Assembly: GCA_950097015.1 (NCBI GenBank)
Contig: CATNEN010000002.1
Span: 434,001-498,000 of the forward strand
DNA length: 64,000 bases
From: Macrostomum hystrix
Lineage: Eukaryota > Animalia > Platyhelminthes
Reading direction: 5' to 3'
Shown here in pieces: positions 9,401-61,633 of the stretch; the first letter of the stretch is position 1; each line of letters begins with the position of its first letter. Both the position numbers and the translations under genes were made by a program. Below the pieces are notes generated by a model. It had not been told where the DNA came from. It was given only the letters and a program-made list of their open reading frames with translations, and made no database searches.

Positions 9401-12400
9401 TTCGCCTGGGTGAAAGAGGCGAGGTGACATTGTTTAACTTTAGTCGTTCTCAGTCGCCATCAATAGATCAAGACCCTCTGCTGGTTGGTCCCGGCAGCTA
9501 CCGTGCCGGTCTTGGCGCGGACTTTCAGCCAGTGCTGCTGTTCTTCGACAGTGACAACGGAGCGACGCTACATTTCGGAGACTGCCTTCAACGAGGCCTC
9601 TTCCACCTCATTGAGTCAACTGTTCTTGAAGAATTTTCTAGAGTCACTATCTTGAGCGAAGCGTTGAGCGACGGACTTGTGCATCCGCGCAGCGGAGACC
9701 TGATGAGTCACAAGCATCAGCATCGCGTACCCAATTTGGATTTTTCGCGAGCTCTGCGCGCCGGCAGACTAGTTTTGCGCCTGGCAGCTGAGCTCGCTGC
9801 GACCGTGCAGTCAGTCGACTCCCTGCCGACGCCCGTAGCTGACTCTCTGGCCGAAACTTTGAAACTCGAGTTGAGTCCTCTGGGCTTGTGGCACAGCTAC
9901 GCCGGTATCGAAGATCCGGCCTCCGGAGCTCGTCTGTCTCTCAGCGAAGCTGTTCGCCGAGGCCTCATCAGCCAGACAGAGGCTGACGCACTTTTGAAGC
10001 GCTTACTGCCAAGCTTTCGTGAACTGGCCGAATCCTACGATCCAGTGCGTCGGTTTCTTGTGAATCCAGCGAACGGACAGTTCATCAGTTTAGTGGAAGC
10101 TGTGCGACTCGGCCTACTCACAATAGACCAGCTGCACGAACTTCAGAGGTGCAGGTGCACCGAGTCGCAGTTCTTTTGCGACGATATTTTGGACCAGGAA
10201 ATCGGCTGGCAAGCTTCGGCTAGCGAACTGAACGGATTATCGGACTGGCGCGACTCTCGCACAGCGATTTCCAGCGCCAAGCAGGTCAGGAAGCGTGCTC
10301 AAATCCTTAGCGACAGTGAAAGCAACGCCGCAACTCACGGAGAGTTGACAGTCAGCGGCGACCGCCTAGGGACAGCTGTTTCCGAGCTGAGTCAGCCTGA
10401 GCAAACTCACCCATTGCCACCCCAGGCCAAGTTGGCAAAAGTGTCGTCGCTTGAGGACGCACTGAGTCAGCCAAGTCACGCTGGCACTACAACGAGCGAC
10501 TCGGCACTTTCACACCCGGCAGACAGAAGTAGCGATATCACTCGTGGTCATGAGAGTGGTGTGAAGCATGCTCAAGTGGCCCTAGTGGAGAGACAATCCG
10601 GTATTACTCGAGTGCTGTCTGAGACTGATTCACCCGTTAGCCCGTCATCCCCTACAGCAGAGCCAATGGATTATGAAAGCATAGCCAAAAATGCGGCATC
10701 TAAATTGACTAGAACCAGTCAGCAACCTATTAGGGAATCGGATCAATCAGAAAATGTGCCAGATGGAGGCATTATTCAGCCAACCCAGAAGCCGACCCAG
10801 AATTTTAATCAATTTCATAGAAAACAGAAGCAGGAATTGACCGAGCAGCAAATGACTGGAGCAAAACATTCTGACCAACAACTGGAAAAGGGCATGTCAG
10901 AATCCGGTCAGCAAGGATTCTTGTCAGGATCTGGTCAGCAACAAGATGAAGGTTTTTCAGGATTCATTGAGCAGCAAGATGGAAGCTTGCAAGAATCAGG
11001 TCAGCAACGAGACGTAAGCTTGCCAGAATATGGTCAGCAAAAATATGGAAGCTTGTCAGGATCTGGTCAGCAGCAAGACGGAAGCTCGCTAGGACCAGGT
11101 CAGCAGCAAGACGAAAGTTTGTCAGGATCCGGTCAGCAGCAAGACGGACACTTGCCAAAATTCGGTCAGCAAGACGCAATCTTGTCAGGATCAGGTCAGC
11201 AACAAGACGCAAGCTTGTCAGGATCTGGTGAGAAGCCAGACAGAACATTGCTAGGACCAGGTCAGCAGCAAGACGCCAGCTTGTCAGGATTCGGTCAGCA
11301 ACAAGACTCCAGCTTGTCAGGATCTTGTCAGCAACAAGACGCAAGCTTGTCAGGATCTGGTGAGAAGCCAGACGGAACATTGCTAGGATCAGGTCAGCAG
11401 CAAGACTCAAGCTTGCCAGGATCTGGTCGGCAGCCAGACGGAGCCTTGCTAGAACCAGATCAGCAAAAAGAATCAAGCTTGTCAGGTTTAGGTCAGCAGC
11501 AAGACGGAAGCTTGTCAGGATCCGGTCAGCAACGAGACGGTAGCTTGTCAGGATCCGGTCAGCAACAAGACGGAAGTTTGTCAAGTTCAGATCAGCAACA
11601 AGGACGCTTTTCAGGATCCGGTGAGCAACAAGACGAAAGCTTGTCAGGATCTTGTCAGCAGCAAGATGGACAATTGCCAAAATCCGGTCAGCAAGACGCA
11701 ATCTTGTCAGGATCAGGTCAGCAGCCAGACGGAACCTTGCTAGGACCAGGTCAGCAGCAAGACGCAATCTTGTCAGGATCCGGTCAGCAGCCAGACGCAA
11801 GCTTGTCAAGATCTGGTCAGCAGCATGACGTAAGCTTGTCAGGATCCGGTCAGCAACAAGACTCCAGCTTGTCAGTATCTGGTCAGCAGCCAGACGGAAC
11901 CTTGCTAGGATCCGGTCAGCAACAAGACGCAAGCTTGTCAGGATCTGGTCAGCAAAAAGAATCAAGCTTGTCAGGATCCGGTCAGCAACAAGACTCCAGC
12001 TTGTCAGGATCTGGTCAGCAGCCAGACGGAACCTTGCTAGGATCCGGTCAGCAACAAGACGAAAGCTTGTCAGGATCTGGTCAGCAAAAAGAATCAAGCT
12101 TGTCAGGATCAGGTCAGCAGCCAGACAGAACCTTGCTAGGACCAGGTCAGCAGCAAGACGCAATCTTGTCAGGATCCGGTCAGCAGCCAGACGCAAGCTT
12201 GTCAAGATCTGGTCAGCAGCATGACGTAAGCTTGTCAGGATCCGGTCAGCAACAAGACTCCAGCTTGTCAGGATCCGGTCAGCAGCCAGACGGAACCTTG
12301 CTAGGATCCGGTCAGCAACAAGACGCAAGCTTGTCAGGATCCGGTCAGCAAAAAGAGTCAAGCTTGTCAGGAACCGGTCAGCAACAAGACGCCAGCTTGT

Positions 12401-15400
12401 CAGGATCCGGTCAGCAACCAGACGCAAGCTTGTCAGAATCAGGTCAGCAACACGACTCCAGCTTGTCAGGATTTGGTCAGCAAAAAGACTCAAGCTTGTC
12501 AGGATCGGGTCAGCAGCAAGACGGAAGCTTGTCAGGATCTGGTCAGCGGCAAGGCGCAAGCTTGTCAGGATCTGGTCAGCAACAAGACGCCACCAGCTTG
12601 TCAGGATCCGGTCAGCAGCAAGACTCAAGCTTGTCAGGATCAGGTCAGCAGCAAGACGGAAGCTTGTCAGGATCTGGTCAGCGGCAAGGCGCAAGCTTGT
12701 CAGGATCCGTTCAGCGGCAAGAGGCAAGCTTGTCAGGATCTGGTCAGCGGCAAGAGGCAAGCTTGTCAGGATCCGGTCAGCGGCAAGAGGCAAGCTTGTC
12801 AGGATCCGGTCAGCGGCAAGAGGCAAGCTTGTCAGGATCCGGTCAGCGGCAAGGCGCAAGCTTGTCAGGATCTGGTCAGCAACAAGAGGCAAGCTTGTCA
12901 GGATCTGGTCAGCGGCAAGAGGCAAGCTTGTCAGGATCTGGTCAGCAACAAGACTCAAGCTTGTCAGGATCCGGTCACGGTGATCAGTTACTGGCCTCCG
13001 TGGATATTGATCAAGGCGTTACGTCACAAGACACTGAGCAAAAGCAGTTGCAAGAATTAGAAACAGCTGATGCTGTGAAGTCACAGCAGAACAAGTTCTC
13101 TGAACAGCAACGAGTGGCAATACCAAACAGAAGTCCTTCAGATTCTACAATTGCACTTGCTACAATGGAGCAGCCTTCGACTTGTCAAACAGACTTAAAA
13201 AAGTTACCTTCAGATGGCATTCCTAGTAGAGAACTGCAGAACGACAGCAAAATAACTATATCACAGCTGCAGCCTTCAACTGAGACAGCTGGAACACAAC
13301 AGCATTCAACTGACACAGCTGGAACAGAACAGACTTCAACTGACACAGCTGGAACACAACAGCATTCAACTGACACAGCTGGAACAGAACAGACTTCAAC
13401 TGACACAGCTGGAACAGAAGAGACTTCAACTGACACAGCTGGAACAGAACAGACTTCAACTGAAACAGCTGGAACAGAACAGACTTCAACTGACACAGCT
13501 GAAACACAGCAGCCTCCAACTGACACAGCTGGAACAGAACAGACTTCAACTGAAACAGCTGGAACAGAACAGACTTCAACTGACACAGCTGAAACACAGC
13601 AGCCTCCAACTGACACAGCTCTAACACAGCATCTTTCAACTGACACAGCTGGAACACAACAGCCTTCAACTGACACAGCTGAAACAGAACAGGCTTCAAC
13701 TGACACAGCTGGAACAGAACAGACTTCAACTGACACAGCTGGAACAGAACAGACTTCAATTTACACAGCTGGAACAGAACAGACTTCAACTGACACAGCT
13801 GGAACAGAACAGACTTCAACTGACACAGCTGGAACACAACAGCATTCAACTGACACAGCTGGAACAGAAGAGACTTCAACTGACACAGCTGGAACAGAAC
13901 AGACTTCAACTGAAACAGCTGGAACAGAACAGACTTCAACTGACACAGCTGAAACACAGCAGCCTCCAACTGACACAGCTCTAACACAGCAGCTTTCAAC
14001 TGACACAGCTGGAACACAACAGCCTTCAACTGACACAGCTGAAACAGAAAAGACTTTAACTGACACAGCTGGAACAGAACAGACTTCAACTGACACAGCT
14101 GGAACAGAACAGACTTCAATTTACACAGCGGGAACAGAACAGACTTCAACTGACACAGCTAGAACAAAAGAGACTTCAACTGACACAGCTGGAACACAGC
14201 AGCCTCCAACTGACACAGCTCTAACACAGCATCTTTCAACTGACACAGCTGGAACACAACAGCCTTCAACTGACACAGCTGAAACAGAACAGGCTTCAAC
14301 TGACACAGCTGGAACAGAACAGACTTCAACTGACACAGCTGGAACACAACAGCCTTCAACTGACACAGCTGGAACAGAAGAGACTTCAACTGACACAGCT
14401 GGAACAGAACAGACTTCAACTGAAACAGCTGGAACAGAACAGACTTCAACTGACACAGCTGAAACACAGCAGCCTCCAACTGACACAGCTCTAACACAGC
14501 ATCTTTCAACTGACACAGCTGGAACACAACAGCCTTCAACTGACACAGCTGAAACAGAACAGGCTTCAACTGACACAGCTGGAACAGAACAGACTTCAAC
14601 TGACACAGCTGGAACAGAACAGACTTCAATTTACACAGCTGGAACAGAACAGACTTCAACTGACACAGCTGGAACAGAACAGACTTCAACTGACACAGCT
14701 GGAACACAACAGCATTCAACTGACACAGCTGGAACAGAAGAGACTTCAACTGACACAGCTGGAACAGAACAGACTTCAACTGAAACAGCTGGAACAGAAC
14801 AGACTTCAACTGACACAGCTGAAACACAGCAGCCTCCAACTGACACAGCTGAAACAGAACAGGCTTCAACTGACACAGCTGGAACAGAACAGACTTCAAC
14901 TGACACAGCTGGAACAGAACAGACTTCAATTTACACAGCGGGAACAGAACAGACTTCAACTGACACAGCTGGAACACAACAGCATTTAACTGACACAGCT
15001 GGAACAGAACAGACTTCAACTGACACAGCTGGAACACAACAGCCTTCAACTGACACAGCTGGAACAGAAGAGACTTCAACTGACACAGCTGGAACACAAC
15101 AGCCTTCAACTGACACAGCTGGAACACAGCAGTCTTCCACTGACACAGCTGGAACAGAACAGGCTTCAACTGACACAGCTGGAACAGAACAGACTTCAAC
15201 TGACACAGCTGAAACACAGCAGCCTCCAACTGACACAGCTCTAACACAACAGCAGCAGCCTTCAACTGACACAGCTGGAACACAACAGCGTTCAACTGAC
15301 ACAGCTGGAACAGAAGAGACTTCAACTGACACAGCTAGAACACAACAACATTCAACTGACACAGCTGGAACAGAACAGACTTCAACTGACACAGCTGGAA

Positions 15401-18400
15401 CACAACAGCAGCAGCCTTCAACTGACACAGCTAGAACACAACAGCAGCAGCCTGCAACTGACACAGCTGGAACACAACAGCAGCAGCCTTCAACTGACAC
15501 AGCTGGAACACAGCAGCCTTCAACTGACACAGCTAGAACACAACAGCAGCAGCCTTCAACTGACACAGCTAGAACACAACAGCAGCAGCCTTCAACTGAC
15601 ACAGCTGGAACACAGCAGCCTGCAACTGACACAGCTAGAACACAACAGCAGCAGCCTTCAACTGACACAGCTGGATCACAGCAGCCTTCAACTGACACAG
15701 CTAGAACACAACAGCAGCAGCCTTCAACTGACACAGCTGGAACACAGCAGACTTCAACTGACACAGCTCTAACACAGCAGCAGCCTGCAACTGACACAGC
15801 TGGAACACAGCAGACTTCAACTGACACAGCTGGAACACAGCAGACTTCAACTGACATAGCTGGAACAGAAAAGACTTTAACTGACACAGCTGGAACAGAA
15901 AAGACTTTAACTGACATAGCTGGAACAGAGCAGACTTCAACTGACACAGCTGGAACAGAAAAGACTTTAACTGACACAGCTGGAACACAGCAGCATTCAA
16001 CTGACACAGCTGGAACACTGCAGCAGTCTTCAACTGACACAGCTGGAACAGAGCAGACTTCAACTGACACAGCTGGAACACAGCAGCGGCCTGCAACTGA
16101 CCCAGCTGGAACACAGCAGCAGCCTGCAACTGACACAGCTGGAACACAGCAGCAGCCTGCAACTGACACAGCTGGAACACAGCAGCAGCCTGCAACTGAC
16201 ACAGCTGGAACACAGCAGCAGCCTGCAACTGACACAGCTGGAACACAGCAGCAGCCTGCAACTGACATAGCTGAAACACAGCAGCCTTCAACTGACACAG
16301 CTGGAACACAGCAGCCTTCAACTGACACTGCTGGAACAGAACAGACTTTAACTGACACAGCTGGAACAGAACAGACTTCAACTGACACAGCTCTAACACA
16401 ACAGCAGCCTTCAACTGACCCAGCTGGAACACAGCAGCGGCCTGCAACTGGCACAGCTGGAACAGAACAGCATTCAACTGGCACAGCTGGAACAGAACAG
16501 ACTTCAACTGACACAGCTGGTACACAGCAGCCTTCAACTCACACAGCTGGAACACAGCAGCCTTCAACTCACACAGCTGGAACACAGCAGCCTTCAACTG
16601 ACACAACTGGAACCGAACAGACTTCAACTGACACAGCTGGAACAGAACAGCATTCAACTGACACACCTGGAACACAGCAGCAGTCTTCAACTGACACAGC
16701 TGGAACACAGCAGCAGCCTGCAACTGACCCAGCTGCAACACAGCAGCGGCCTGCAACTGACCCAGCTGGAACACAGCAGCGGCCTGCAACTGACCCAGCT
16801 GGAACACAGCAGCGGCCTGCAACTGACCCAGCTGGAACACAGCAGCAGCCTGCAACTGACACAGCTGGAACACAGCAGCAGCCTGCAACTGACACAGCTG
16901 GAACACAGCAGCGGCCTGCAACTGACACAGCTGGAACACAGCAGCGGCCTGCAACTGACCCAGCTGGAACACAGCAGCGGCCTGCAACTGACACAGCTGG
17001 AACACAGCAGCGGCCTGCAACTGACCCAACTGGAACACAGCAGCAGCCTGCAACTGACCCAGCTGCAACACAGCAGCGGCCTGCAACTGACCCAGCTGGA
17101 ACACAGCAGCGGCCTGCAACTGACACAGCTGGAACACAGCAGCGGCCTGCAACTGACACAGCTGGAACACAGCAGCCTTCAACTGACACAGCTGGAACAC
17201 AGCAGCCTTCAACTGACACAGCTGGAACACAGCAGCGGCCTGCAACTGACACAGCTGGAACACAGCAGCGGCCTTCAACTGACACTGCTGGAACAGAACA
17301 GACTTTAACTGACACAGCTGGAACAGAACAGACTTCAACTGACACAGCTGGAACACAGCAGCAGCTTTCAACTGACACAGCTGAAACACAGCAGCCTGCA
17401 ACTGACACAGCTGGAACACAGCAGCAGCCTGGTGACGATGTCATGGAGACTAGCCAGCCATCAGTTTTGAAGCCGAAAGGACCAAGCGAAGGCATAATCG
17501 CTTCCATTGAAAACCTGTTAGCTGGTTCCAATTCAGGGCAGTCCCAGTGGGTTTTGGGTCAGTCTGAGCTTACGGCAGAGGCGGCGGCTGCGCTTCTAGC
17601 GATTAGTCTCGGCCAGGTTAGTACAGGTGGTTCTAGGATTGCTGTCACGCTGCTTGGCTTCATTAGTGAGAATAACTTCAGAAACAGAACTGGAACTAAT
17701 ATCGGAGATTTATTTAACAGTCGCGCAGTTAAAATTTAATATACCTTGCTTTCCCCCATAACGGCTAAAAAGGATTTTCAGTTCCCTGCAGAATTGTCAC
17801 ACTTTTTGCGGTGGATCGCACCAGGTGTGAATAATAACGACTGTTGACTTCAGTAGCTCGTGTGTTTCAGCGTTCAGCTTTGCAAACTAAAATCCAGTAA
17901 ATTGCGCACCCATTCGCTCCTGACTCAAAAATTTATAAATTTTAGGTTTTGAATCATGCTTTTTACCTTTGCGTCTAATGCTTATTTAATTTTGAAAACT
18001 GCGCTATATTTTCACCTATTTCGCCTATAATAATAGCATAACAAGTCCGTTCAACCCACCCAACTGCTTGGCAGCCCGCACAGATGCTCACTTCCACAGC
18101 TTCTAACCAGCAAAATCAGCTACAAAGCGCTGATGGTTCCTCCCTACTTAGCCCACAACCCACAGCGCAGGCTAGCTCGGTTGGTCTGTCGGGTTCGCCA
18201 ATCAAAGACTTCGACTCTGAGGTTCGCGATTTCGACGATGTCGTCGATGAAGAAATGCGCGCGGTTCAGGCCGTGAAGCTTCATGCTCCGATGCCGCTTC
18301 GAGACTCCAGAAAGCCAGGTCCTCTTGATATCGTCGATCCCAGTGCGGTGACTGAAGAAAACTTAATTAATCCTCAAGAATCTTCGACGCTTAGCGCCCA

Positions 18401-48310: not shown

Positions 48311-51300
48311 ATGTCCACCGACGAAAGGTCTCTCGTCGATGAATTGTCTGGAGCCATGCATCGAGCGGGATTCAATTCAACAAATGCCAGAGTTCAGTCT
48401 GCGATGAGTGACGTATTCGGTGACTCCTTAAAGTGCATATTGAACATGGAAGAGCTGCATGTGTTCGGCAGCTTCTCGGAAGGATGGGGCAGTTGCTTGA
48501 GTCAGCTGGATGGGAGCATCGAAGAAGGCAGCGATATTGACATCACGGTGATTACTGACGTAAAGCCAACTCACCTTTGTGACGAATCCATGAGCGCTAG
48601 CGACTGCGCGTCCGAGCACACGTGCGCCCGACTAGCGGACGGTCACGTGCAGTTTCGAACTCAAGGTCTGTACAGAAAACTGCAAACTCAATTGCATTGA
48701 TAAAATGAACTAGTATTAACCATGGCACTGTTAACAAGAAAATTAAAACTACATGGCTTTCAGTGACTATGCCGAACTTCAGCATAGACAGCTCTGGAGT
48801 TCACGGCTTGACATGCGCCTTCGACATCATCCTCGCCTTGCCCTGCTGCGGCTATCCTCCAGTCGCCGTTCTCCAGCCAGACTACAGGAACCGCGTCGGT
48901 CAACCTTCCTGCATGCCTGAGCCCATCATGAAGCTGCTCAGAGACCAGGTGTTCGGAGACTCGCCCAAGTGTCACGCGGTCTCGGCGTCGCCTCCAGGTG
49001 AGGAAGGCGGATACCTGCGAGTGAGCACAACCTTCCTTGAGAGAGTTGTCTTGCGCAACCTCAGCACCGTTCAGGGTCAGTTCTTCATTATTGTCAAGTT
49101 CCTCATCAAGAGGGTGATTAGCAAAGAGGTGAGCGGTCTGAAGACGTACATGGCCAAGAACTTGCTGTTCTACATGCTCGACGAGACTGCAGCAGAAGAG
49201 TGGAAACCGGAGAACTTAGTGGAGCTGACTAGGCGGGCGCTTAAAATGCTTTTGAGTATGATCGAGTTATTGAATCCCAAAGAATCAGAGGACGTGCTCG
49301 TGTGCATGAAGCATTTCTTTCTGCGTGATGCCAACGTGTACTTTAAGAAAATCAAGACGGACAAAAATCTATCTAATCCTCCGAAACCGCAGAGGCGAGA
49401 TATTGTGGCCGCTGTTAGAATGACAGTTCAGAATCTTTCCGCTGAACTAAAAAACTTCAAGAGCCAACTCAGTGAATTCGAAGTAACGACGGTGTCTTTC
49501 TACGCCTTCCACGCTTTTCTTCTCGTCTCAGAGATCTTCCTGGCCAGTTTACAGAATACCGATTTTATGAGCATAATCAGCATGCACAAGGCTGTGGTTA
49601 GCGCGTACAAGACGATCGCAGAAAACCGCAGTCACTCTTCGGCAAGCAACTGTTTGCCATTCCTTCTTAACAAAGTGGCAGAGATTCCTGACAAGGTGCA
49701 AGTCACCAGAGAGTGCCTTAGAGCCATGGCTTATCGGAGAGCTGGAGTGCCTGTGACATCTTTGAACGATAAATTCGGATTTGCCATCAGTAGAGAAATC
49801 GATTGCAGTGCCATTTCGGGAGAAATCTCTCATGAAGACGCAAAGGCAAAAGTGCTGAAAGTACTCGAGGAAACCGATCCGTTCCGGATCCAGCTGCATG
49901 ACGGAAAAATAGTCAGCTGCAACATGAAGAAAGAGTGCGAAGGATTAGCTTCCTGCATGGCCTCTATTAGACGAGGCGAGGTGATTCGAAGCGAGCAACT
50001 CCTACAGTCTGTGATGCTGGTTTCTCCGCTTGTTCCGCTGCTGTTTAGCTATAATGTAAGTTTTATTTGTGTCTTCATATATGAACTGGTAGTCCCTTTA
50101 CTGCAACCAATTTTTATGTCCATTTCCTTTTGTCCATACCATAGACCCTTCTATACTTAAAGACATAAAAAGTCGGTTCCTTTGGGAAGGAGACATCTTG
50201 TTATACAAAGCGTGGCTTAGGATGAACTATTGTGCAAGGGTTTTATGTTACGCCTGCAGTCGCCGTCTGCTTTCGTCAGCAGCGTGATAATCGCAATGGC
50301 CGAATTCATGCTCACAACTTGTCAAAGCGGCAGAGTGATAAAATAAGCGTAGCAGTTTAGCGTAGAGCAATTTTAGACGGTTGTCAACAGAGGTAAGAAT
50401 GAATGGAGCTAATGTCACGCGCCGGCACCGAAAAATACGGTCAAAGCCTTCACTAATTGTCCGACGGCTGGCTGGGTACAGCTATTCTTAGTACAAAAGA
50501 CTTAACAAGCTGTGTGGGGCTGCGTTCCAACCAGAGATGAAGAAATATCTGCATTTTCAGCGCCTACAGAAGCAGGACTTTTAATAATATATCATATATA
50601 GGCTCGAAGGTTTATCTAAACACAATTAAGTATAGAATAATACCCCCCTGATTTCGTTTCTTTGGCCTAGGAACGGCTGAGGACGCGTCTCTTGGCCGAG
50701 GCGAAGCCGAGGCCCAGAAGCGCAGTCCGGAGCCGTTCCTAGGACTTTTTAACCATAGACTGCAAATTGAGCAGCCACTATTTTATATGAAATTCGATTT
50801 GGTTTGGCGCCCATTATATGGTTTAATGGGCCCCGTTTTTGGGACCATTATATGGCACACTGGTTCAAGACTTCGCATTTCCAACGATAGACGATAGATT
50901 CGTGGCTCAGAATGCGCCCATTAAACGTCCATTAACGACGAAATCGGATTTTATATGACTGGCTTAGGCCAGTTAAATAATAAATACGTAGAATAGGCCG
51001 GGCCAAGCTGGGGATTAACAATAAGTGAGCTCTGCAGCTTAACCAGAGGCTATGATTCTATGTCATCTTGAGCATTCATTGGGTGGCGCATTGAATGCAA
51101 GCTATAAGATCACCGGTTTATATTTTCAGTTTTTTGGAATTTCAATATGCAGCTTGATTCCTTATAAATCGAGTTCTCTATGGTCTTAAGTTGTAAGTTT
51201 ACCCCTCAGCCGGTAACTGGAGGAGGTTCCTCATGCAGGAAATGTGGATTCGACGAAAATCCTCATAGTGGGAGTAAAATAAGAACAAAAAACCAATGTC

Positions 51301-51812
51301 TTAATAGTGATTAATGGAGATTCTGAGACACCCCGACAAGAATAGTTGAACATCTCGACGATGACGTTGTTTCATGATCCTAAAAGTTGTTTCATCGGAT
51401 AATGCGAAAAAATCTAGCCCGTCTTCTGGATTTTCATGATGATTGGTTGAATATTTTAGGAGATAGAGAAAAAAGAAAAATGTGGCTATTTGATTATAAC
51501 CCCATAGTCTGTCGATCCTTAAACTACGCTCGTAAAAAAAACTTAACTTTTTAGAGGGTCGAGGAGCCTCGCGCCAGACAGGCTCTGACCCGTCTCACTC
51601 GGCAATTCCGAGCGTTGCTGGCAGGCAGTGAGCAGAATAGCACCGGCGATACCTTTGCCGGTTCCATTGAATCCGCTGATCATCTGGAACTGATTGGCAT
51701 GCTAGTTGAAGAAGAAATTGATGCTGACGATAATGAAACAGCTGATGCCATTTCGAAGACTGATGAGACACAGACGACACCTTCTGGGCTGACCGAAGAT
51801 GATATTGATTGA
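48311..51812 (+). CDS. Mab-21 / cGAS-like receptor (cGLR) nucleotidyltransferase paralog 1; exons 48311-48665, 48764-50055, 51555-51812
   Basis: GSFSEG...SDIDITV (first two catalytic acids), AFDIILAL (third Asp), YLRVSTTFLERVVL, LKTYMAKNLLFYML...W, CMKHFFLRDANVY (Mab-21 C-lobe). Junctions G|gtctgt..tttcag|TG and AAT|gtaagt..ttttag|AGG are in frame and at the same positions as in paralog 2. Confidence 0.85.
50666..50743. repeat. 78-nt symmetric hairpin capped by GGCGAAGCC in cGLR1 intron 2
   Basis: cctaggaacggct (50666-50678) / agccgttcctagg (50731-50743) perfect outer stem; inner ggac/gtcc and ggcc/ggcc pairs; centre at 50704. Confidence 0.8.
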
Positions 51813-52004
51813 CAATATGAAACCGAAAGAGCATGCCGTTTAAAATTGATAAAATTTGAGATTCTTCCAACTCATCGCTGTCATTTAGATTTGCAGTTTC
51901 AAGTATTCATGTAAAATGCAGTTTGTTGCACCTTAAATTCCTCAAATTTCTACCCTTTTCTCATGCAAAAATTGACTGATTCGCAAATACGCTAAATTTG
52001 CGAA

Positions 52005-52476
52005 GTCACTCTGTTCCTTGGTCACTCTGTTCCTTGGTCACTCTGTTCCTTGGTCATTCTGTTCCTTGGTCATTCTGTTCCTTGGTCACTCTGTTCCTTG
52101 GTCACTCTGTTCCTTGGTCACTCTGTCCCTTGGTCACTCTGTCCCTTGGTCACTCTGTTCCTTGGTCACTCAGTTCCTTGGTCACTCTGTTCCTTGGTCA
52201 CTCTGTTCCTTGGTCACTCTGTTCCTTGGTCACTCTGTTCCTTGGTCACTCTGTTCCTTGGTCACTCTGTTCCTTGGTCACTCTGTTCCTTGGTCACTCT
52301 GTTCCTTGGTCACTCTGTTCCTTGGTCACTCTGTTCCTTGGTCACTCTGTTCCTTGGTCACTCTGTTCCTTGGTCACTCTGTTCCTTGGTCACTCTGTTC
52401 CTTGGTCACTCTGTTCCTTGGTCACTCTGTTCCTTGGTCACTCTGTTCCTTGGTCACTCTGTTCCTTGGTCACTCT
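52005..52476. repeat. 16-bp minisatellite (gtcactctgttccttg), about 29.5 copies
   Basis: Near-perfect head-to-tail array; a few variants in the first third. Confidence 0.97.
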
Positions 52477-52551
52477 TCCGTTTTCATGTACTCGTAGATA
52501 TACATTATTCATTACCTGTGAGATAAAAACTGACTTAGCTACTTTTAGTAG

Positions 52552-52706
52552 TGTTGTGCAGTTGATTAATGCACGTACATAGTTCGTACATGTACACCTC
52601 TGATATCGATTGGCGCAGAATATATATAGTCCAAATACGGAGAGCCAACTTGGCGTGAAAGTTTCGGATACTAACTTGGCTGACTCGCTACTATTCATTT
52701 ACAACA
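52552..52706 (+). repeat. 5' LTR (155 bp)
   Basis: tgttgtgcag...tttacaaca; terminal inverted tgttgt/acaaca; TATA-like tatatatag near 52621. Confidence 0.97.
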
Positions 52707-52707
52707 T

Positions 52708-52725
52708 TGGCATCGCAAGCTCAAG
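52708..52725 (+). promoter_or_regulatory. Putative primer-binding site
   Basis: tggcatcgcaagctc starts 1 nt after the 5' LTR; TGG complements the tRNA CCA end; priming tRNA not identified. Confidence 0.6.
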
Positions 52726-52837
52726 CGAACACCCACCCCAATAAGCCGGGGTCGGAGTAGACTGAAGTGAAGTGACTGCAAGCCTGCCAAGCCAAGCGTA
52801 AACAACAGCGCCAAACTGCAAAAGTGCAAACTGAAAC

Positions 52838-55800
52838 ATGACGAGTGACAGCAACTCAGCAGAAGCGCCGCGGATCAGCGTATCGCCGCCGGATCAATTC
52901 CTGCCGCAGCCGGGCCGACCGGCGAGGCCGTGGAAAGAGTGGAAGGCCCTCTTTGAGAACTACTTACTTGCGGCCGGCTGCGACACTTTGCCGGAAGCGA
53001 GGAGGCGCGCGCTGTTGCTGCACTGCCTTGGCGTGGAAGGGCAGCGAGTCTTTGCGGCTGTGGCAGCAACGAAGAGGCCGAGTCCGACAGAACTCGCGGC
53101 GACAGTCGCGATTCTGGACGAGCAGTTCGGAGCCAAAGTCAACGTGGTGGCGGAGCGCCACAAGTTTCGGCAGCGCAGTCAGCGTCCGGGTGAAAAGATT
53201 GCGGACTTCGTGGCGGCTCTGTATGCTCTGGCTGGCTCATGTGAGTTCCGCGACATGATGGAAGAAATGATCCGCGACCAGATCGTGGAGAAGGTCAGCG
53301 ACAGGCGAATTCGAGAGCGCTTGCTGATCGAGGACGGCCTGACGCTGCAGAAGGCAGTGACGCTGAGCCAGCAATGAGAGACCAGCATCGCTGAGGCCAG
53401 CGCGATAGAGACGGAAGGCGCAGCCGCGGCCGGAGCACAGCTGGAAGAAGAGGTGAAGAGAGTCCGACTACAACCAGACAGGAAGAACACAGGACAAGGG
53501 CGACCAGATCGAGAGTCATGCTCCAAGTGCGGAGGCGGGCACAACAGACGAGCCCGGTGTCCAGCTGAAGGCAAGAGATGTCATGTCTGCGGGAAGGCGA
53601 ACCATTTCGGCCGGATGTGCAGGTCGCAGGGCGCCAAGGTCGCCGAGGTCATGGACGAGAGCGGCCAAGCCGTGTACATGGTGCGCGGCGCCGCCAGTCC
53701 CGACATCCGCTGCCGGCTGAATGTGCATGGCATCTGGCTGAATCTGCTTGTAGACTCGGGAGCCAAGGTGTCCATCCTGTCAGAGAGGACCTTCAGGAAG
53801 CTCGGAAACCGGTCGCCACTCCAGCCGTCGACCAAGAAACTCATCGCGTACAACGGCAAGGCAATCGATGTCGTCGGCGAGGCGGTGCTGTCCGTCAGCT
53901 ATCGCGGCCAGCTGGTGCCATTTTTCTGCTTTACCGTGGTACGGCAAGGCTCCGACATCATGGGAACGGATCTGATGCAGCACCTCAGCTTCCAGGTGGT
54001 GGACAAGGACGGCGACCTCGTGCGCACAGTCGAAAAAACGGCAGAGCTACCGGTCTGGCTGGCCGAGCGCTTCAAGCCACTGACGCAGGGACTCGGGCGG
54101 ATCCGAGGATTCGAGCACCGGCCCAGGCTGAACCCCGCCGTGCCCCCGGTGGCGCAATCGCTTCGCCGCATCCCACTTAGCATCAAAGACAAAGTCCAGG
54201 CGGAGATTGACCAGCTGCTGGAGGATGACATCATCGAGGAGATCCAGGCTTCAGAGTGGATTTCGAACCTGGTGATCGTCCCGAAGCCTGATGGCAAAAT
54301 CAGGGTCTGCAATGACCTCAGGTGCCCAAACAAGGCCATAGTTCAGGATAAGCAGCCGCTGCCGACATTCGAGGAGCTGACAACGGAGTTCAAGGGCTCG
54401 ACCGTGTTCACTAAGCTGGATTTAAATTCTTCGTATCTGCAGTTGGAGCTAGCAGAAGATAGGCGGGACTTAACGGCCTTCATTACGGAGAAAGGGCTGT
54501 ACCGGTACAAGCGCGCATGCTATGGCCTAAACAGCGCCCCGGCGGCCTTCCAGAAAGTTCTCAGCAAGATTCTCCATGGCTGTTCCGGGACGCTGCACTA
54601 CATCGACGACATAGTGGTGCACGCTGCCAACGAGGCGGAGCACCTGCGGCGGCTCACGACAGTGCTGGACAAGCTACTCGCCCATGGCGTCACGCTCAAC
54701 GCCTCAAAGTGCCAGTGGGCTGCAGAGACAGTGCAGTTCCTGGGCTACATCGTCTCCGCGAGAGGACTTCAGCCGATGCAGTCTAACGTTGAAGACATCG
54801 AGGCGGTGCCGGAGCCCCAGAACGCCGAGGCAGTGGCCTCATTTCTGGGAATGGTTAAATTCTATTCCAACTTTCTGCACAACTTGTCCGACATCGCCGA
54901 GCCGCTGCTGCTGCTACTTCGCAAAGAGCAGCCCTGGAACTGGACAACAGATTGCCAAAAGGCTTTTTGGAGGCTCAAGAAGATGGTGGTGTCCCCAACA
55001 TGCTTGCGATTCTTCAGTCCCGACGACAAGATCATCGTGGCCTGCGACAGCTCCGCGCACGCTCTGGGGGCCGTGCTGATGCAAGACGACAGCGCCGGGG
55101 TTCGAAGACCAGTTGCTTTCGCGTCAAGGACCCTGTCAGCGACCGAGCGCAAGTACTCCGCATCAGAGAGAGAGGCTCTCGCGTGCATCTTCGCGTGCGA
55201 GAGATGGCACTATTTCCTGTTCGGCCGGAGATTCGAGCTGCACACGGACCACCAGGCTCTGACGACGCTGCTGACGGCTCAAGGCAGCGGCCACCGGCCT
55301 CTGCGGCTTCATCGATGGGCCGACCGCCTGCTCGCGTACGACTTCCAAGTCTGCCACGTTCCTGGCAAGAAGAACATCGTGCCAGATTTTTTGTCGCGCC
55401 ACGGCGCTCTCGGAGCAAAATGTCCAAGGCAAAGCGAAGAGGACTCGACCGAGCTCAAAGTGAATGCCGTACTGCTGTCGGGCGCGCTGGAGATTGTCAG
55501 TCCAAGCGAACTGGCCGAGGCATCCCTGCAGGACCCGGTGATCAATGATGCGGTCACAATGACGCTCCAGGGGTGGCCTAACTCCATCAAGCAGCTGAAG
55601 CCGGAGCTACAGCCGTTCTGGAGGATGCGGACGCAACTGGCGCTCTGGAATGACGGCAAGTGCCTGGCCAACGGCACCCGAGCAGTAATCCCCGCATCCC
55701 TGAGGGAGAAGACGCTGCAGCTGGCGCATTTCGGGCACCTCGGCGTGAGCAAAATGAAGCAGCATTGCCGGGACGCAGTCTGGTGGCCGCAAGTCGATCA

Positions 55801-56836
55801 GCATATCGAGGAATTTGTGCGACATTGCCTGCCTGCCTGCCTGCTTAGCGAGAAGAACTTTAAGCCACCCAAGACGGTCCTGACGCCTACGAAGTGGCCG
55901 ACGCGTCCATGGGAGGAACTCCAGCTCGACATCTTCGGGGAGCTGCACTCTGCACCGAACTCCTGTCGCTTCATCCTGGTGCTGTACGATTTGCATTCAA
56001 AGTGGCCGGAGGCTGCCTGCATGTCGACTGTCACAAGCGCGGATGTCATCGACGCCCTGACAACGTGGTTTAGCCGCTGGGGCCTGCCGAAGAGCATTAA
56101 AACAGACGGAGGTCCGCAGTTCGTGTCCGGCGATTTCGAGGATTTTCTTCAGCGCTGCGGCATCCGGCACCGGCAGTCACCGCACTACCACCCCCAGGGC
56201 AACGCGGCCGTAGAGCGCTTCAACCGTTTTCTCAAGGACGGCCTAAAGACGCACCTAGAGGAGGGCTACGACTTCAAGGACGCGGTGAAGACGCTGCTGT
56301 GGTCGTACAGGGCCACCCCACATGCACTGACTGGAGTGTCACCGGCGGAGCTCATGACAGGCCGGAAGATCAGCACCCCGTTGACAGCTCTGCAGCCAAG
56401 GACAACAGCGCGGCACAGACTGGCGGCCAGCATCAAGCGGAGGCAGCAGCGCGTTTTCGATCAGCTCAACACGACCCGGAGGCCGCCGCCCACGTTCATA
56501 GTCGGCGACTGGGTGCGCGTGAAGCGGCCGTTCGCCCGCGGCAAGCTGAGCAGCCGCCTGTCCGAGCCACGGCAGATCTCCCGGATTGCGAGCGCGACCA
56601 CCGTCATCCTCAGCGATGGCTCCCGCTGGCACGTCGACAACTGCGTCCGGGTACCGCGGCCAGCCGGAGCGCTGCCGCACTGGCCAGCGCCGGCTCCCAG
56701 CGCAGCCGGGACAGCCGCGGAGGCGGCGACGACGGCAGACCCAGCGAGACAGCAGCAGCCAGCCCAGACAGCGATCCGAGTGAGCTCAAGGCCGCGAGCG
56801 CCGCCGCAATGGTACGGTGAAATCGTGACTCACTGA
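52838..56836 (+). CDS. gag-pol polyprotein in one frame, interrupted by a single TGA (53375-53377)
   Basis: Gag (WKEWKALFENY..LLLHCLG), knuckles CSKCGGGHNRRARC and CHVCGKANHFGRMC, protease LLVDSGA, RT YIDDIVV, RNase H ACDSS..SEREAL..TDHQAL, integrase HFGH..C..C and D..D..E (LDIF, KTDGG, AVERFN). ORFs 52838 and 53453 share a frame. Confidence 0.92.
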
Positions 56837-57004
56837 CTCGTTTATTAAGGACGGTTATTCAGCTGTTATTAGCGATCAGCTGTTTCGATTTAATTCTCTT
56901 TGAAGTACCTGTTGCATAAAAAGATCATTTTACTCCTTCGATGCTTGGTAATGCACTTTTATTTCCTGCTCAATATTTGCATAATTATTTTCGTTGCTCT
57001 ATCC

Positions 57005-57022
57005 TTTGAAAGGGAAGGTGAA
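57005..57022 (+). promoter_or_regulatory. Polypurine tract
   Basis: tttgaaagggaaggtgaa immediately before the 3' LTR. Confidence 0.8.
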
Positions 57023-57177
57023 TGTTGTGCAGTTGATTAATGCACGTACATAGTTCGTACATGTACACCTCTGATATCGATTGGCGCAGAATATATATAG
57101 TCCAAATACGGAGAGCCAACTTGGCGTGAAAGTTTCGGATACTAACTTGGCTGACTCGCTACTATTCATTTACAACA
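57023..57177 (+). repeat. 3' LTR (155 bp)
   Basis: No mismatch to the 5' LTR on manual comparison. Confidence 0.97.
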
Positions 57178-57261
57178 AGTAGTTTACAGACATTTTATAT
57201 CGTGTAGCTTAGCTTTACTCGGCTAACTTACCCCTGTGTAGGTTTTATCGGTGTATAATTC

Positions 57262-57557
57262 GTATAGCGGTCTAACGCGTTTGCCTCTGGCACCAAGGTC
57301 CCTGAGCTCGATTTCGCGGCGAGGCCCCATTAATTTGTGGTGCAGAAGGCTTGTCGCGCAATTCACGTCCTTTTGGGCCAACCTCCAAGGCACAGTACAC
57401 TGCATCACAATGATGAAGTCAGGGCAGATGTACACACCTGTGTGCTCAGGAGTCAGCGAAATGGGCAGAATTGCCTCCTCGCTGGCCGCAGGTCTAGTGT
57501 CACCAAATGATGTGCCACTGGCCGTAGCCCTCCTGCAAGTTATTGTCATTATTAGTA
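57262..57557 (+). mobile_element. SINE family A copy
   Basis: gcaccaaggtccctgagctcgatt, ctccaaggcacagt, gaagtcagggcagatgtacacacctgtgtg, gtgtcaccaaatgatgtgccactg shared with 43528-43830. Confidence 0.75.
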
Positions 57558-57817
57558 AGTTAACTGGCTTTCCCCAATCAGAATAGGCTGATTAACTTCC
57601 CTCAGATGAAGAAGATTAGCTTTCCTGTGGATGAGTAGATTGCAGCGTTCTTTCCAAATCGATACTAAGTTTTGCAGGAGTTTTCTTTCAGTAGGAAGTT
57701 TTGGTCCCTGAATTTCCGTCAACAGTCTGTAACTATTGGCAACAAGCGACAAAAAAGTAAAATTTGGCTTTATTTGACAAAATTTCTTTAAATCCCGATG
57801 TTTTAGCCGCTGAACAG

Positions 57818-58416
57818 TATCTAAACGGTTACTGTGTATCTAACAGGTTCCTGTGTATCTAACAGGTTCCTGTGTATCTAACAGGTTCCTGTGTATCTAA
57901 CAGGTTCCTTTGTATCTAACAGGTTACTGTGTATCTAACAGGTTCCTGTGTATCTAACAGGTTCCTTTGTATCTAACAGGTTCCTGTGTATCTAACAGGT
58001 TCCTGTGTATCTAACAGGTTCCAGTGTATCTAAAAGGTTCCTGTGTATCTAACAGGTTCCTGTGTATCTAAAAGGTTCCTGTGTATCTAAAAGGTTCCAG
58101 TGTATCTAAAAGGTTCCTGTGTATCTAACAGGTTCCTGTGTATCTAAAAGGTTCCTGTGTATCTAAAAGGTTCCTGTGTATCTAAAAGGTTCCTGTGTAT
58201 CTAACAGGTTCCTGTGTATCTAAAAGGTTCCTGTGTATCTAACAGGTTCCTGTGTATCTAACAGGTTCCTGTGTATCTAATCGGTTCATGAATATCTAAC
58301 AGATTCCTGTGTATCTAACAGGTTCCTGTGTATCTAACAGGTTCCTGTGTATCTAAAAGGTTCCTGTATATCTAACAGGTTCCTGTTTATCTAACAGGTT
58401 CCTGTTTATCTAACAG
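57818..58416. repeat. 19-bp minisatellite (ctgtgtatctaacaggttc), about 31 copies
   Basis: Head-to-tail array; taac/taaa variants cluster in the middle. Confidence 0.96.
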
Positions 58417-59661
58417 TAAAAAACGCAGCCAAAATTCCACTGGAAGGTTGCGGCAGCGAATCGCAGGCCTTCCGCGCCTTGGCAACAGCAGCAAGTGCAT
58501 CGCTGGGCAGCTTCCTCGAATTCTAGTCTGCCCTATCGAACAGCCACCTGCCTGTCGATGAGAGGCGGGCTTTGGCGACCAGAAAACCTCAGCGAATGCG
58601 TCGATCTGACCAACCTGCTGATTTCGGAGCTCAACCTGTGAGCACCTTCGAGCTCAAATCCTGTCGAGTCGATGATCTAATTAGCTCATTCACATTCAGC
58701 TGGCTTGTCTTCCATCTCACCCTCCTGTCACCCTCCTTCCTCAAATTTCTACCCTTTTCTCATGCAAAAATTGGCTGATTCGGAAATAGACGAAATGTAC
58801 TTTCTTATAGCAGCTGGAACGCCAAAAACAAAAAAAGATTTTTCAAAATCAATTTTATGTTCTACCATGCACTATCATAAGTCTACAGTAAAAATATCAC
58901 TTAATCCTACATTCTATGTATTGATTGATTAGTCTTTGAATCAAATGCGGTCGGTTTTACAACGGTTTCTCGACGTCATACGACGCCATAGAATCTCGAC
59001 GTGACTCATACCAGCCAATCAGATAGCTCGGATTTGGCTGGCATAGAGGGGTCCAAAATGGCTATAAAGACGAGACACTGGTGCACTATAAAAGTCAATT
59101 ACCTAAAGTTTTCTACGAGTGTATGAGCTGAAAACGAAAAACTTTTTATTTTTGTTTTCGCTAAAACGTCACAAAATTTACAATAATACATACTTACTTT
59201 CGGAAAGTATTAAGGGCTAGTGTCGCAATACATTTGTTGCTAAGTCTTAGAGTACAATAGTACCTGACACGTCCTGAGAATTCTCTCAGGATTTAGTTAC
59301 GTATTTCTTGGCCCATCCTGAGTTACAAAAATGAAATATCACACAACCGCTACTCTGAAACGCGCAACCATATAGCACAAGTGCACAAGTCCAGCTTGTG
59401 ACAAACCTAAGAGAAGGAAAATTTCGCCATTTTCACAAGTAAAGCTGTGCAAATGTTCACGAGACTTTCAAGCAGAGAGTAATCTTTGCAAGGTAGTAAA
59501 GCGCAACTGTTGAGTTAAGCGCAACCACAGCACAGCTCCGATTTTTATAAAATTGCGGCTATAAAGTCTTTTTTGAATCGGAAAAGGTATATCAGCAATT
59601 GTGACATCATCTATAAACTCGTATAACTAGTTTGTGGCAGCCACGAGACAAGTTTCAAGAA

Positions 59662-61633
59662 ATGAGCAGCGAAGAGGCACTGAGCATGAAGCTGTCTGAA
59701 AAGATGCAGCGTGTTGGATTCAACTCGCGCAATGCCAGGGTTCAATCAGCCATCGCTGACACGTTGTTCGATATTTTTAGATTCCTTTTCAAGCTGGAAG
59801 ATCTGCATATGTTTGGCAGCTTCTCTGATGGCTGGGGCAGCTGCTTGACTAAACTGGATGGTAGCGTGGAAGATGGCAGCGATATTGACGCCACTGTCAT
59901 CTTCTCTGACCTGGATGTGGTACACCTATGTACTGCGTCTATGACAAACATTACCTGCAGCGCGCCAGGTAATACGTTTTCTGACTACAGAGATGGTCAT
60001 ATCAGGTCTCCAATCAAGGGTTAGTTTAATTGATAGTTAATATCACGTTTTTTTCATCCAACTTTGATATTTTAATGTTAATACTGATCAAGTAAAAATG
60101 TTAATTTTTAGCGAACGCGCCAAACTTATGCTTTCCTAAGCCGAAGAACAACACGATCTGCGCCTTCGACCTGATATTCGCCCAGCCCTGCTGCGGCTAT
60201 CCTCCAGTCGCCGTTCTCCAGCCAGACTACAGGAACCGCGTCGGTCAACCTTCCTGCATGCCTGAGCCCATCATGAAGCTGCTCAGAGACCAGGTGTTCG
60301 GAGACTCGCCCAAGTGTCACGCGGTCTCGGCGTCGCCTCCAGGTGAGGAAGGCGGATACCTGCGAGTGAGCACAACCTTCCTTGAGAGAGTTGTCTTGCG
60401 CAACCTTAACACCGTTCAGGGTCAGTTCTTCATTATTGTCAAGTTCCTCATCAAGAGGGTGATTAGCAAAGAGGTGAGCGGTCTGAAATCGTACATGGCC
60501 AAGAACTTGCTGTTCTACATGCTCGACGAGACTGCAGCAGAAGAGTGGAAACCGCAAAACCTGCTCCGCCTTGTGCGGAAGTCGCTGAATATGCTAGCAG
60601 ATATGATGGAAAGCTCTGACGCTAACGACGTCTGCATGAAGCACTTCTTTCTTAGAGACGCAAATGTTTATTTAAAGAAGCAAAAATTAAACACAGATTA
60701 TTATATACCCAAAGGTGCAATAATCGCCGTTGTGAAGAAAACGGTTGAACAACTCACCGTCCACGTGCGTAGCTATCTAGACATAATTCCAGGACCCGAA
60801 GTAAGCGTTGTCCACTTCCACGTATTTTATATCTTTCTGGTTTACGTAGAAATTCTTGAATCAGCCGGTGACAAGCACATCTCGATTCTCCAAGGCCTAT
60901 TCGAATTGGTTGCGAGTGTTAAGATCTCCATTGAAGACTTTCACAGCTCATCCGAGAACTCGCGTCTCGAATTTATTCTCAAGAGAGTGGCGGAGATTCC
61001 AGAAACATTGCCAGCCACCAAAGAGCACCTCAAGGTGATGGCCTACCAGAGAGTTGGAATACCTTTCTCTGATTCAGGCAACAATTTGGAATATTCCTTC
61101 AACAGAGGCATCGACTGCAATTTCATTTCCGATGAAACAACTCACGAGGAAATAAAGTCACTGGTGCTGATGACATTGTCAGAGGTCAACGCCTTCGGAA
61201 TCGTTGCTTCAGGAGAAAAAATAATCAGCTGCAAATTCGAGGACATGATCGGAGGCCTTCTTTCATACTTCACTAATATTCGGCGCGGTGTCATTCCTAG
61301 GAGCGATCTTCTGCTTCAAGCGATATCTAGAATCTCGCCGATAGTTTCTGAGCTGCATGAGTGCGATGTGAGTTCAATTCTGGTTGAAATGCTGCTTGAA
61401 ATTTCACGAACTTTGATTAGCTTACATGACTGAACCCCAAAATGTGTGCTTTTCTTTTCAAGAAGCTGCAAATGTTGCGCACCAGAGCCAATCTGATCCG
61501 GATGATGGGTCAGATACGCAGGTCGCTGCCCTTGGCCAGGCGGCCTCGAAATTTAAATTCGACTGGCGAGTCCGATGTCTACAGTCGCCCACCTGGCCTA
61601 GAAACATTGTTGATTGAAGATGATCTGGATTGA
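59662..61633 (+). CDS. Mab-21 / cGAS-like receptor (cGLR) paralog 2; exons 59662-60019, 60112-61367, 61463-61633
   Basis: GSFSDG...SDIDATV, AFDLIFAQ, LKSYMAKNLLFYML, CMKHFFLRDANVY; junctions G|gttagt..ttttag|CG and GAT|gtgagt..tttcaag|AAG in frame; ends EDDLD* like paralog 1 EDDID*. Confidence 0.85.

Follow-up and report, generated by a model that had tools for sequence, protein, structure and literature searches.

A 64,000-nucleotide stretch of the Macrostomum hystrix genome (contig CATNEN010000002.1, positions 434,001 to 498,000; hereafter the window) carries two tandem paralogs of the cGAS-like (Mab21-fold) class, genes A and B, which lie on the same strand 11.3 kb apart and have at least three exons each. 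The genes are anciently duplicated. Within their second exons, however, a block of 370 bp is almost identical in DNA, and its most probable origin is non-allelic (interlocus) gene conversion, a reading to which we assign a probability of about 0.82. The two copies of the block are as follows.

48840 to 49209, plus strand: putative conversion tract, copy A; 123 codons, 366/370 nucleotides identical to copy B
60185 to 60554, plus strand: putative conversion tract, copy B; carries a derived Asn (60408-60410) and a derived Ser (60489-60491)

The alignment of the two copies has no gaps; its offset is 11345 throughout, and nucleotide identity is 98.9%. When identity was counted in bins of 30 nucleotides, it dropped sharply at both edges. 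At the 5' edge, bins of 30/30 give way to a single bin of 22/30, which holds the conserved CAFD motif, and then to values of 4-10/30; at the 3' edge the successive values are 18, 17, 12 and 8/30. Synonymous divergence (dS, Nei-Gojobori) over the 123 codons of the tract is 0.024, nonsynonymous divergence (dN) is 0.007 and the proportion of synonymous differences (pS) is 0.02. In the flanks dS is saturated (1.89 for exon 1, 2.2 for exon 2 downstream of the tract), with pS of 0.69-0.71, nucleotide identity of 52-61% and amino acid identity of 0.38. The longest identical run between the aligned second exons is 222 nucleotides; when the aligned exon-2 sites were shuffled 20000 times, no run exceeded 41 (Sawyer-type test). 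The first introns (98 nucleotides in A, 92 in B) could not be aligned with each other. Comparison of the window with itself between the A and B loci returned, beyond the tract, only weak matches of conserved coding blocks.

These results agree with what the original prediction had read from the letters. It had counted four differences in 370 nucleotides, two of them changing an amino acid (S/N and T/S), and the gap-free alignment gives the same count. The abrupt divergence that it described outside the tract is present with the peptides it had quoted (TCAFDIILAL versus ICAFDLIFAQ before, ENLVELTRRAL versus QNLLRLVRKSL after), the introns are indeed too far apart to align, and both the sliding identity and the synonymous divergence set the tract apart from its flanks.

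Conserved blocks elsewhere in the same two genes served as internal controls. The exon-1 block with the GS and DxD motifs (48345-48552) is 73% identical between A and B, and the CMKHFFLRDANVY block (49303-49349) is 79% identical. As an external DNA baseline, the tract block of A or B is 69-73% identical to that of the M. lignano homologs P0001 and P0004 (pS 0.53-0.59), for which DNA was taken from L001 and L002. In protein, the identity of the block is 0.65 ± 0.05, with a maximum of 0.75, over 52 pairs of family members whose downstream divergence is similar to that of A and B; the value for A and B is 0.98. Excess identity of this tract-like kind was seen in none of the 52 other pairs. Inside the tract, a stretch of about 30 codons (exon-2 residues 36-65) varies within the family, with pairwise identities of 0.23-0.34, but does not differ between A and B. 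This stretch excludes protein-level constraint as the cause of the tract's identity, and an identity of silent sites that is confined to a sharp sub-genic tract is explained only by transfer of DNA between the paralogs.

Constraint could in principle act on the nucleotides themselves. An overlapping element, such as a structured RNA, an antisense gene or a small-RNA target, would then have kept the block identical since the duplication without any transfer, and minus-strand open reading frames (ORFs) do overlap both tract copies (48760-48975 and 60126-60557). These ORFs differ in extent between the copies, though, and fit a GC-rich coding strand; the block is just 69-73% identical in DNA among other family members; and an Rfam search gave one sub-threshold match only (17 bits, where the gathering score is 60). 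We regard this explanation as exceedingly improbable.

Two further properties of the tract were considered and set aside. GC content at third codon positions is 0.72 in the tract and 0.52-0.59 in the flanks, as GC-biased conversion would leave it, but the rise is equally present in unconverted M. lignano genes (0.705 versus 0.563), so it is not specific evidence for such a bias. The edges of the tract follow those of the conserved block only roughly, because the variable 30-codon stretch lies inside the tract and conservation continues for about 20 amino acids past the 3' edge.

Under gene conversion, one copy would have served as template during repair or recombination and overwritten the other, in register, over 370 bp of exon 2. 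The event would be recent relative to the duplication, with about 1% divergence in the tract as compared to saturated silent sites outside it. It may be a single recent event, or the latest of a series that kept the block similar enough for further recombination; either history would account for the tract, and a selective purpose is not required. Phylogenetic trees join A and B as sister genes; their branch lengths are 0.54 and 0.93 in the non-tract part and 0 and 0.017 in the tract. With flanks that are similar in composition and an outgroup ortholog absent from the sample, neither copy stands out as donor or recipient.

Several observations weigh against conversion. The tract and non-tract trees have the same topology, and sister-species orthologs of A and B are not in the sample. 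At the expected identity of about 72% conversion is mechanistically hard unless earlier events had kept the block similar, which favors repeated conversion maintaining a recombination-competent block; at the tract edges, however, there is no gradient of identity to show earlier, longer events. The four differences inside the tract are clustered in a way not expected if one event had been followed by simple point mutation. Finally, no independent copy of the arrangement was recovered. An exact protein look-up of the gene B exon-2 ORF gave no match, no second copy came from word searches, whether the query was exon 2 or the tract with its flanks, and a DNA pattern spanning the tract junction had no match in metagenome contigs. 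The matches that the word searches did return were M. lignano Mab-21 proteins, at no more than 57% identity, and one metagenome protein.

The reverse history is formally compatible with the same mosaic of identity. A and B would be recent duplicates, the flanks of one copy would later have been overwritten from divergent paralogs, and the tract would be the sole remnant of the original likeness. This requires two long replacements, extending also over exon 1, the intron and the whole of the intergenic DNA, and not one of these can be aligned; in the flanks A and B are still each other's closest relatives. Such a history appears very improbable.

The mosaic is known from the assembled sequence, and an artefact of assembly or polishing could also produce one, if the truly divergent tract of one copy had been overwritten in the consensus by reads of the other. 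The very sharp edges of identity would suit such an error, as would the absence of an independent copy of A or B from the protein and metagenome collections searched. The expected true divergence of about 28% is nevertheless far too high for reads to be misplaced between the copies, and 370 bp is spanned by any long read. The window contains no Ns and runs without a gap through kilobase-scale tandem arrays, as assemblies from long reads do. Neither frame nor register is disturbed, and four differences are retained, which indicates that the two copies were resolved separately. An artefact is improbable, and gene conversion remains the better account of the tract.

The four differences between the copies are 49062 C/T (silent), 49064 G/A (Ser/Asn), 49143 G/A (silent) and 49144 A/T (Thr/Ser), given as A/B. 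They form two tight clusters, each within 3 nucleotides (simulated P about 3e-4), at 49062-49064 and 49143-49144 in A and at 60407-60409 and 60488-60489 in B. Each cluster pairs one silent change with a neighboring replacement. At both replacements the derived residue is the one in copy B; the family alignment columns there hold Ser/Thr and a near-invariant Thr, respectively. Multi-nucleotide mutations, such as those associated with repair, could account for the clusters, as could short unconverted patches or re-divergence under selection. Nested conversion events were considered as well, since all four differences lie in the 3' 148 nucleotides of the tract, but this bias is not significant when the differences are counted as two mutational clusters.

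The gene models in which the tract is embedded are given below.

48311 to 48665, plus strand: gene A exon 1, from ORF and translation; aligns with exon 1 of M. lignano P0001; donor AAG/GTCTGT
48666 to 48763, plus strand: gene A intron 1, 98 nucleotides, GT..AG, phase 1; position matches the P0001 gene in L001
48764 to 50055, plus strand: gene A exon 2, ending at the GTAAGT donor at 50056
59662 to 60019, plus strand: gene B exon 1, counted from the first ATG; GS and DxD motifs; donor AAGG/GTTAGT
60020 to 60111, plus strand: gene B intron 1, 92 nucleotides, phase 1
60112 to 61367, plus strand: gene B exon 2, with the third catalytic Asp at 60168-60170; GTGAGT donor at 61368, aligned with the donor of A

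The spine helices are encoded in exon 1 of gene A, together with the GS motif (48467-48472) and the DxD catalytic pair (48533-48541). Exon 2 of A encodes the third catalytic Asp (GAC, 48823-48825), what remains of the cGAS-like domain and a C-terminal domain specific to the family. Open frames, intron positions and phases, and the acidic triad are kept in both genes. The motifs read from the sequence are FGSFSEGWGS, DIDITV and AFDII in A, and FGSFSDGWGS, DIDATV and AFDLI in B. P0001, the closest database relative, has its intron at the same position as A and B and also has a short third exon; exon 3 of A and of B was not located by similarity search. All searches with A and B used single exons, never joined.

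The Pfam Mab-21_C model matches gene A at exon-2 residues 112-199 (E 4e-5, 24.1 bits, equal to the cut-off) and gene B more strongly (E 5e-7, 30.3 bits). The N-terminal Pfam Mab-21 model matched neither gene, and a family profile run against PDB sequences matched no solved cGAS or cGAS-like receptor (cGLR). The cGAS-like fold was assessed on the full-length homolog P0001, which is 45% identical to A, rather than on a joined model of A or B. The AlphaFold2 model of P0001 has a mean predicted local distance difference test score (pLDDT) of 80 and a predicted template modeling score (pTM) of 0.85, and its best PDB matches in Foldseek are all cGAS or cGLRs, with probability 1.00. Residues 6-335 align with cGAS over 264 residues (Z 14.1, root-mean-square deviation 3.9). 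The score against Cv-cGLR1 (PDB 8gjw) is Z 13.8, and those against MAB21L1 (Z 12.8) and MiD51 (Z 12.7) are almost as high. This predicted structure is consistent with the cGAS-like identity that the original prediction had proposed, and A and B are plausibly receptors of the cGAS-like type that carry a tail specific to their family. In both genes the GS motif, DxD pair and third Asp are taken here to be the equivalents of those in cGAS, by motif reading and the fold match rather than by a residue-level alignment tool.

The family-specific C-terminal domain comprises about 195 amino acids (49468-50055 in A, 60786-61367 in B) and is the most divergent part between the two genes. Its model, built from gene A (pLDDT 70), is mostly helical with two small hairpins. 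No known fold was recognized in it: Foldseek matches had E >1, and the best VIA score was Z 6.1, to generic helical bundles.

A Cys-Cys...Cys-His set (C28, C29, C70 and H71; 48844-48849 and 48970-48975) lies within the tract and is invariant in 14/14 aligned family members. It may be a metal site that takes the place of the zinc thumb of cGAS. One family member, P0009 (504 amino acids), is intronless on L003 (JGI metagenome 3300040801, contig of 2867 bp), which could be a transcript-derived contig or come from a different flatworm.

In protein terms the tract corresponds to residues 142-263 of P0001, within the cGAS-like domain (6-335). As had been predicted, it starts shortly past the third catalytic Asp, at a distance of five codons; the strand that carries this residue ends immediately before it. 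From there it runs through two strands and several helices and ends in the first third of the helical Mab-21_C lobe. Within it, CHAVSA, RVSTT, the KFLIKR helix and GLKTY presumably occupy positions of the cGAS nucleotide pocket, a placement that draws on motif reading and a fold-level alignment. The description of the tract as a homogenized catalytic core was thus only partly upheld. The tract is sharp and lies in the cGAS-like domain, but the GS motif and all three acidic residues (the DxD pair in exon 1 and the third Asp) lie outside it.

The original prediction had gone further and proposed that a product-determining core is kept uniform while terminal sensing regions diversify. In its adaptive form, selection would maintain the tract so that both sensors share a second messenger or a partner, and the other parts would diversify for different inputs. 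The very divergent flanks of A and B (amino acid identity 0.38) fit this proposal, and the tract holds the family's most conserved residues, including RVSTT, QGQ and GLKTY..KNLLFYMLDET. An equal argument has been made for TLR1/TLR6 (PMC2077338). However, the residues one would most expect to be protected, the GS motif and the acidic triad, are not in the tract, and the family-variable stretch was copied along with the rest, as expected of mechanical copying. Purifying selection already holds the block at about 65% amino acid identity across the family without conversion, none of the 52 other pairs (0/52) has such a tract, and a single recent conversion needs no adaptive reason. In characterized cGLRs, moreover, primary ligand recognition takes place on the nucleotidyltransferase domain's back face and not on terminal extensions (PMC9980059). 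The known ligand surface is therefore on the same domain, and by analogy the tract probably homogenizes part of that surface too. A split between a core kept uniform and terminal sensors that diversify is unsupported, and adaptive homogenization is unlikely.

A more elaborate version, which we consider quite doubtful, would make the tract a self-sustaining island of concerted evolution, recurring with the same limits in other Macrostomum pairs of the A/B type. The module of nucleotide-pocket strands and helices with the CC...CH set would be kept matched between co-operating cGLR sensors, for the sake, for example, of a common product, a common partner or a heteromer, with diversification left to the spine helix and the novel C-terminal domain.

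Interlocus conversion of the globin type produces short, non-reciprocal tracts of hundreds of bp between nearby same-strand paralogs and leaves a sharp mosaic of identity, and in these respects the A/B tract resembles it. In such cases the paralogs are usually more than 90% identical overall, unlike A and B, whose background nucleotide identity is about 52-61%.

Among pattern-recognition genes, conversion has been proposed to limit the divergence of a shared functional region of TLR1 and TLR6 while other domains diversify (Kruithof et al. 2007, PMC2077338). As in that pair, A and B are tandem paralogs of this kind in which a defined sub-genic region has become far more alike through what is probably conversion. 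The TLR1/TLR6 tract, in contrast, is about 300 codons long and recurs, independently and between nearly the same limits, in nine mammals, whereas the A/B tract is known from one genome and has 123 codons. Silent sites in the A and B flanks are saturated, and these flanks are much more diverged than those of TLR1/TLR6. With cGAS and cGLRs (Li et al. 2023, PMC9980059) A and B have the GS..DxD..D motif in common; the fold of their homolog P0001 matches that of these enzymes, and Mab-21_C matches A and B at or near its threshold. A and B differ from cGAS and cGLRs in an extra C-terminal domain of about 200 amino acids and in having no sequence-level match to solved members.

A search of a paper library found no report of gene conversion in the cGLR family. 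The A/B tract is a new example of a well-known process, as a single event in a single genome, and the concept of a shared region kept alike by conversion is not new, having been proposed earlier for TLR1/TLR6 (PMC2077338). It would be a clean case of sub-genic gene conversion in an invertebrate family of cGAS-like receptors. If further species prove to have the tract too, it would point to a module that has to remain matched from one paralogous sensor to the other, and the genes would serve as natural chimeras in which to ask what part of a cGLR determines the product and what part the ligand. The practical lesson is that such tracts should be masked in phylogenies of the cGLR family and in selection scans.

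Between A and B lies a long terminal repeat (LTR) retrotransposon (52552-57177), with direct repeats of 155 nucleotides (52552-706 and 57023-177) that are 100% identical. Its open frames are gag-like (52838-53377) and a Ty3/gypsy-type pol of 1127 amino acids (53453-56836), and it looks like a young insertion. Tandem arrays are found on both of its sides. The one just outside it at 52005-52476 has about 30 copies of a 16-bp unit at 98% identity, and the one on the other side, at 57817-58416, has about 32 copies of a 19-bp unit at 93% identity. Self-comparison of the window also revealed degenerate tandem repeats at 10892-12977 (about 2 kb) and 13260-17431 (about 4 kb), with 77-87% self-identity at many offsets. 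Both regions are probably repetitive coding exons.

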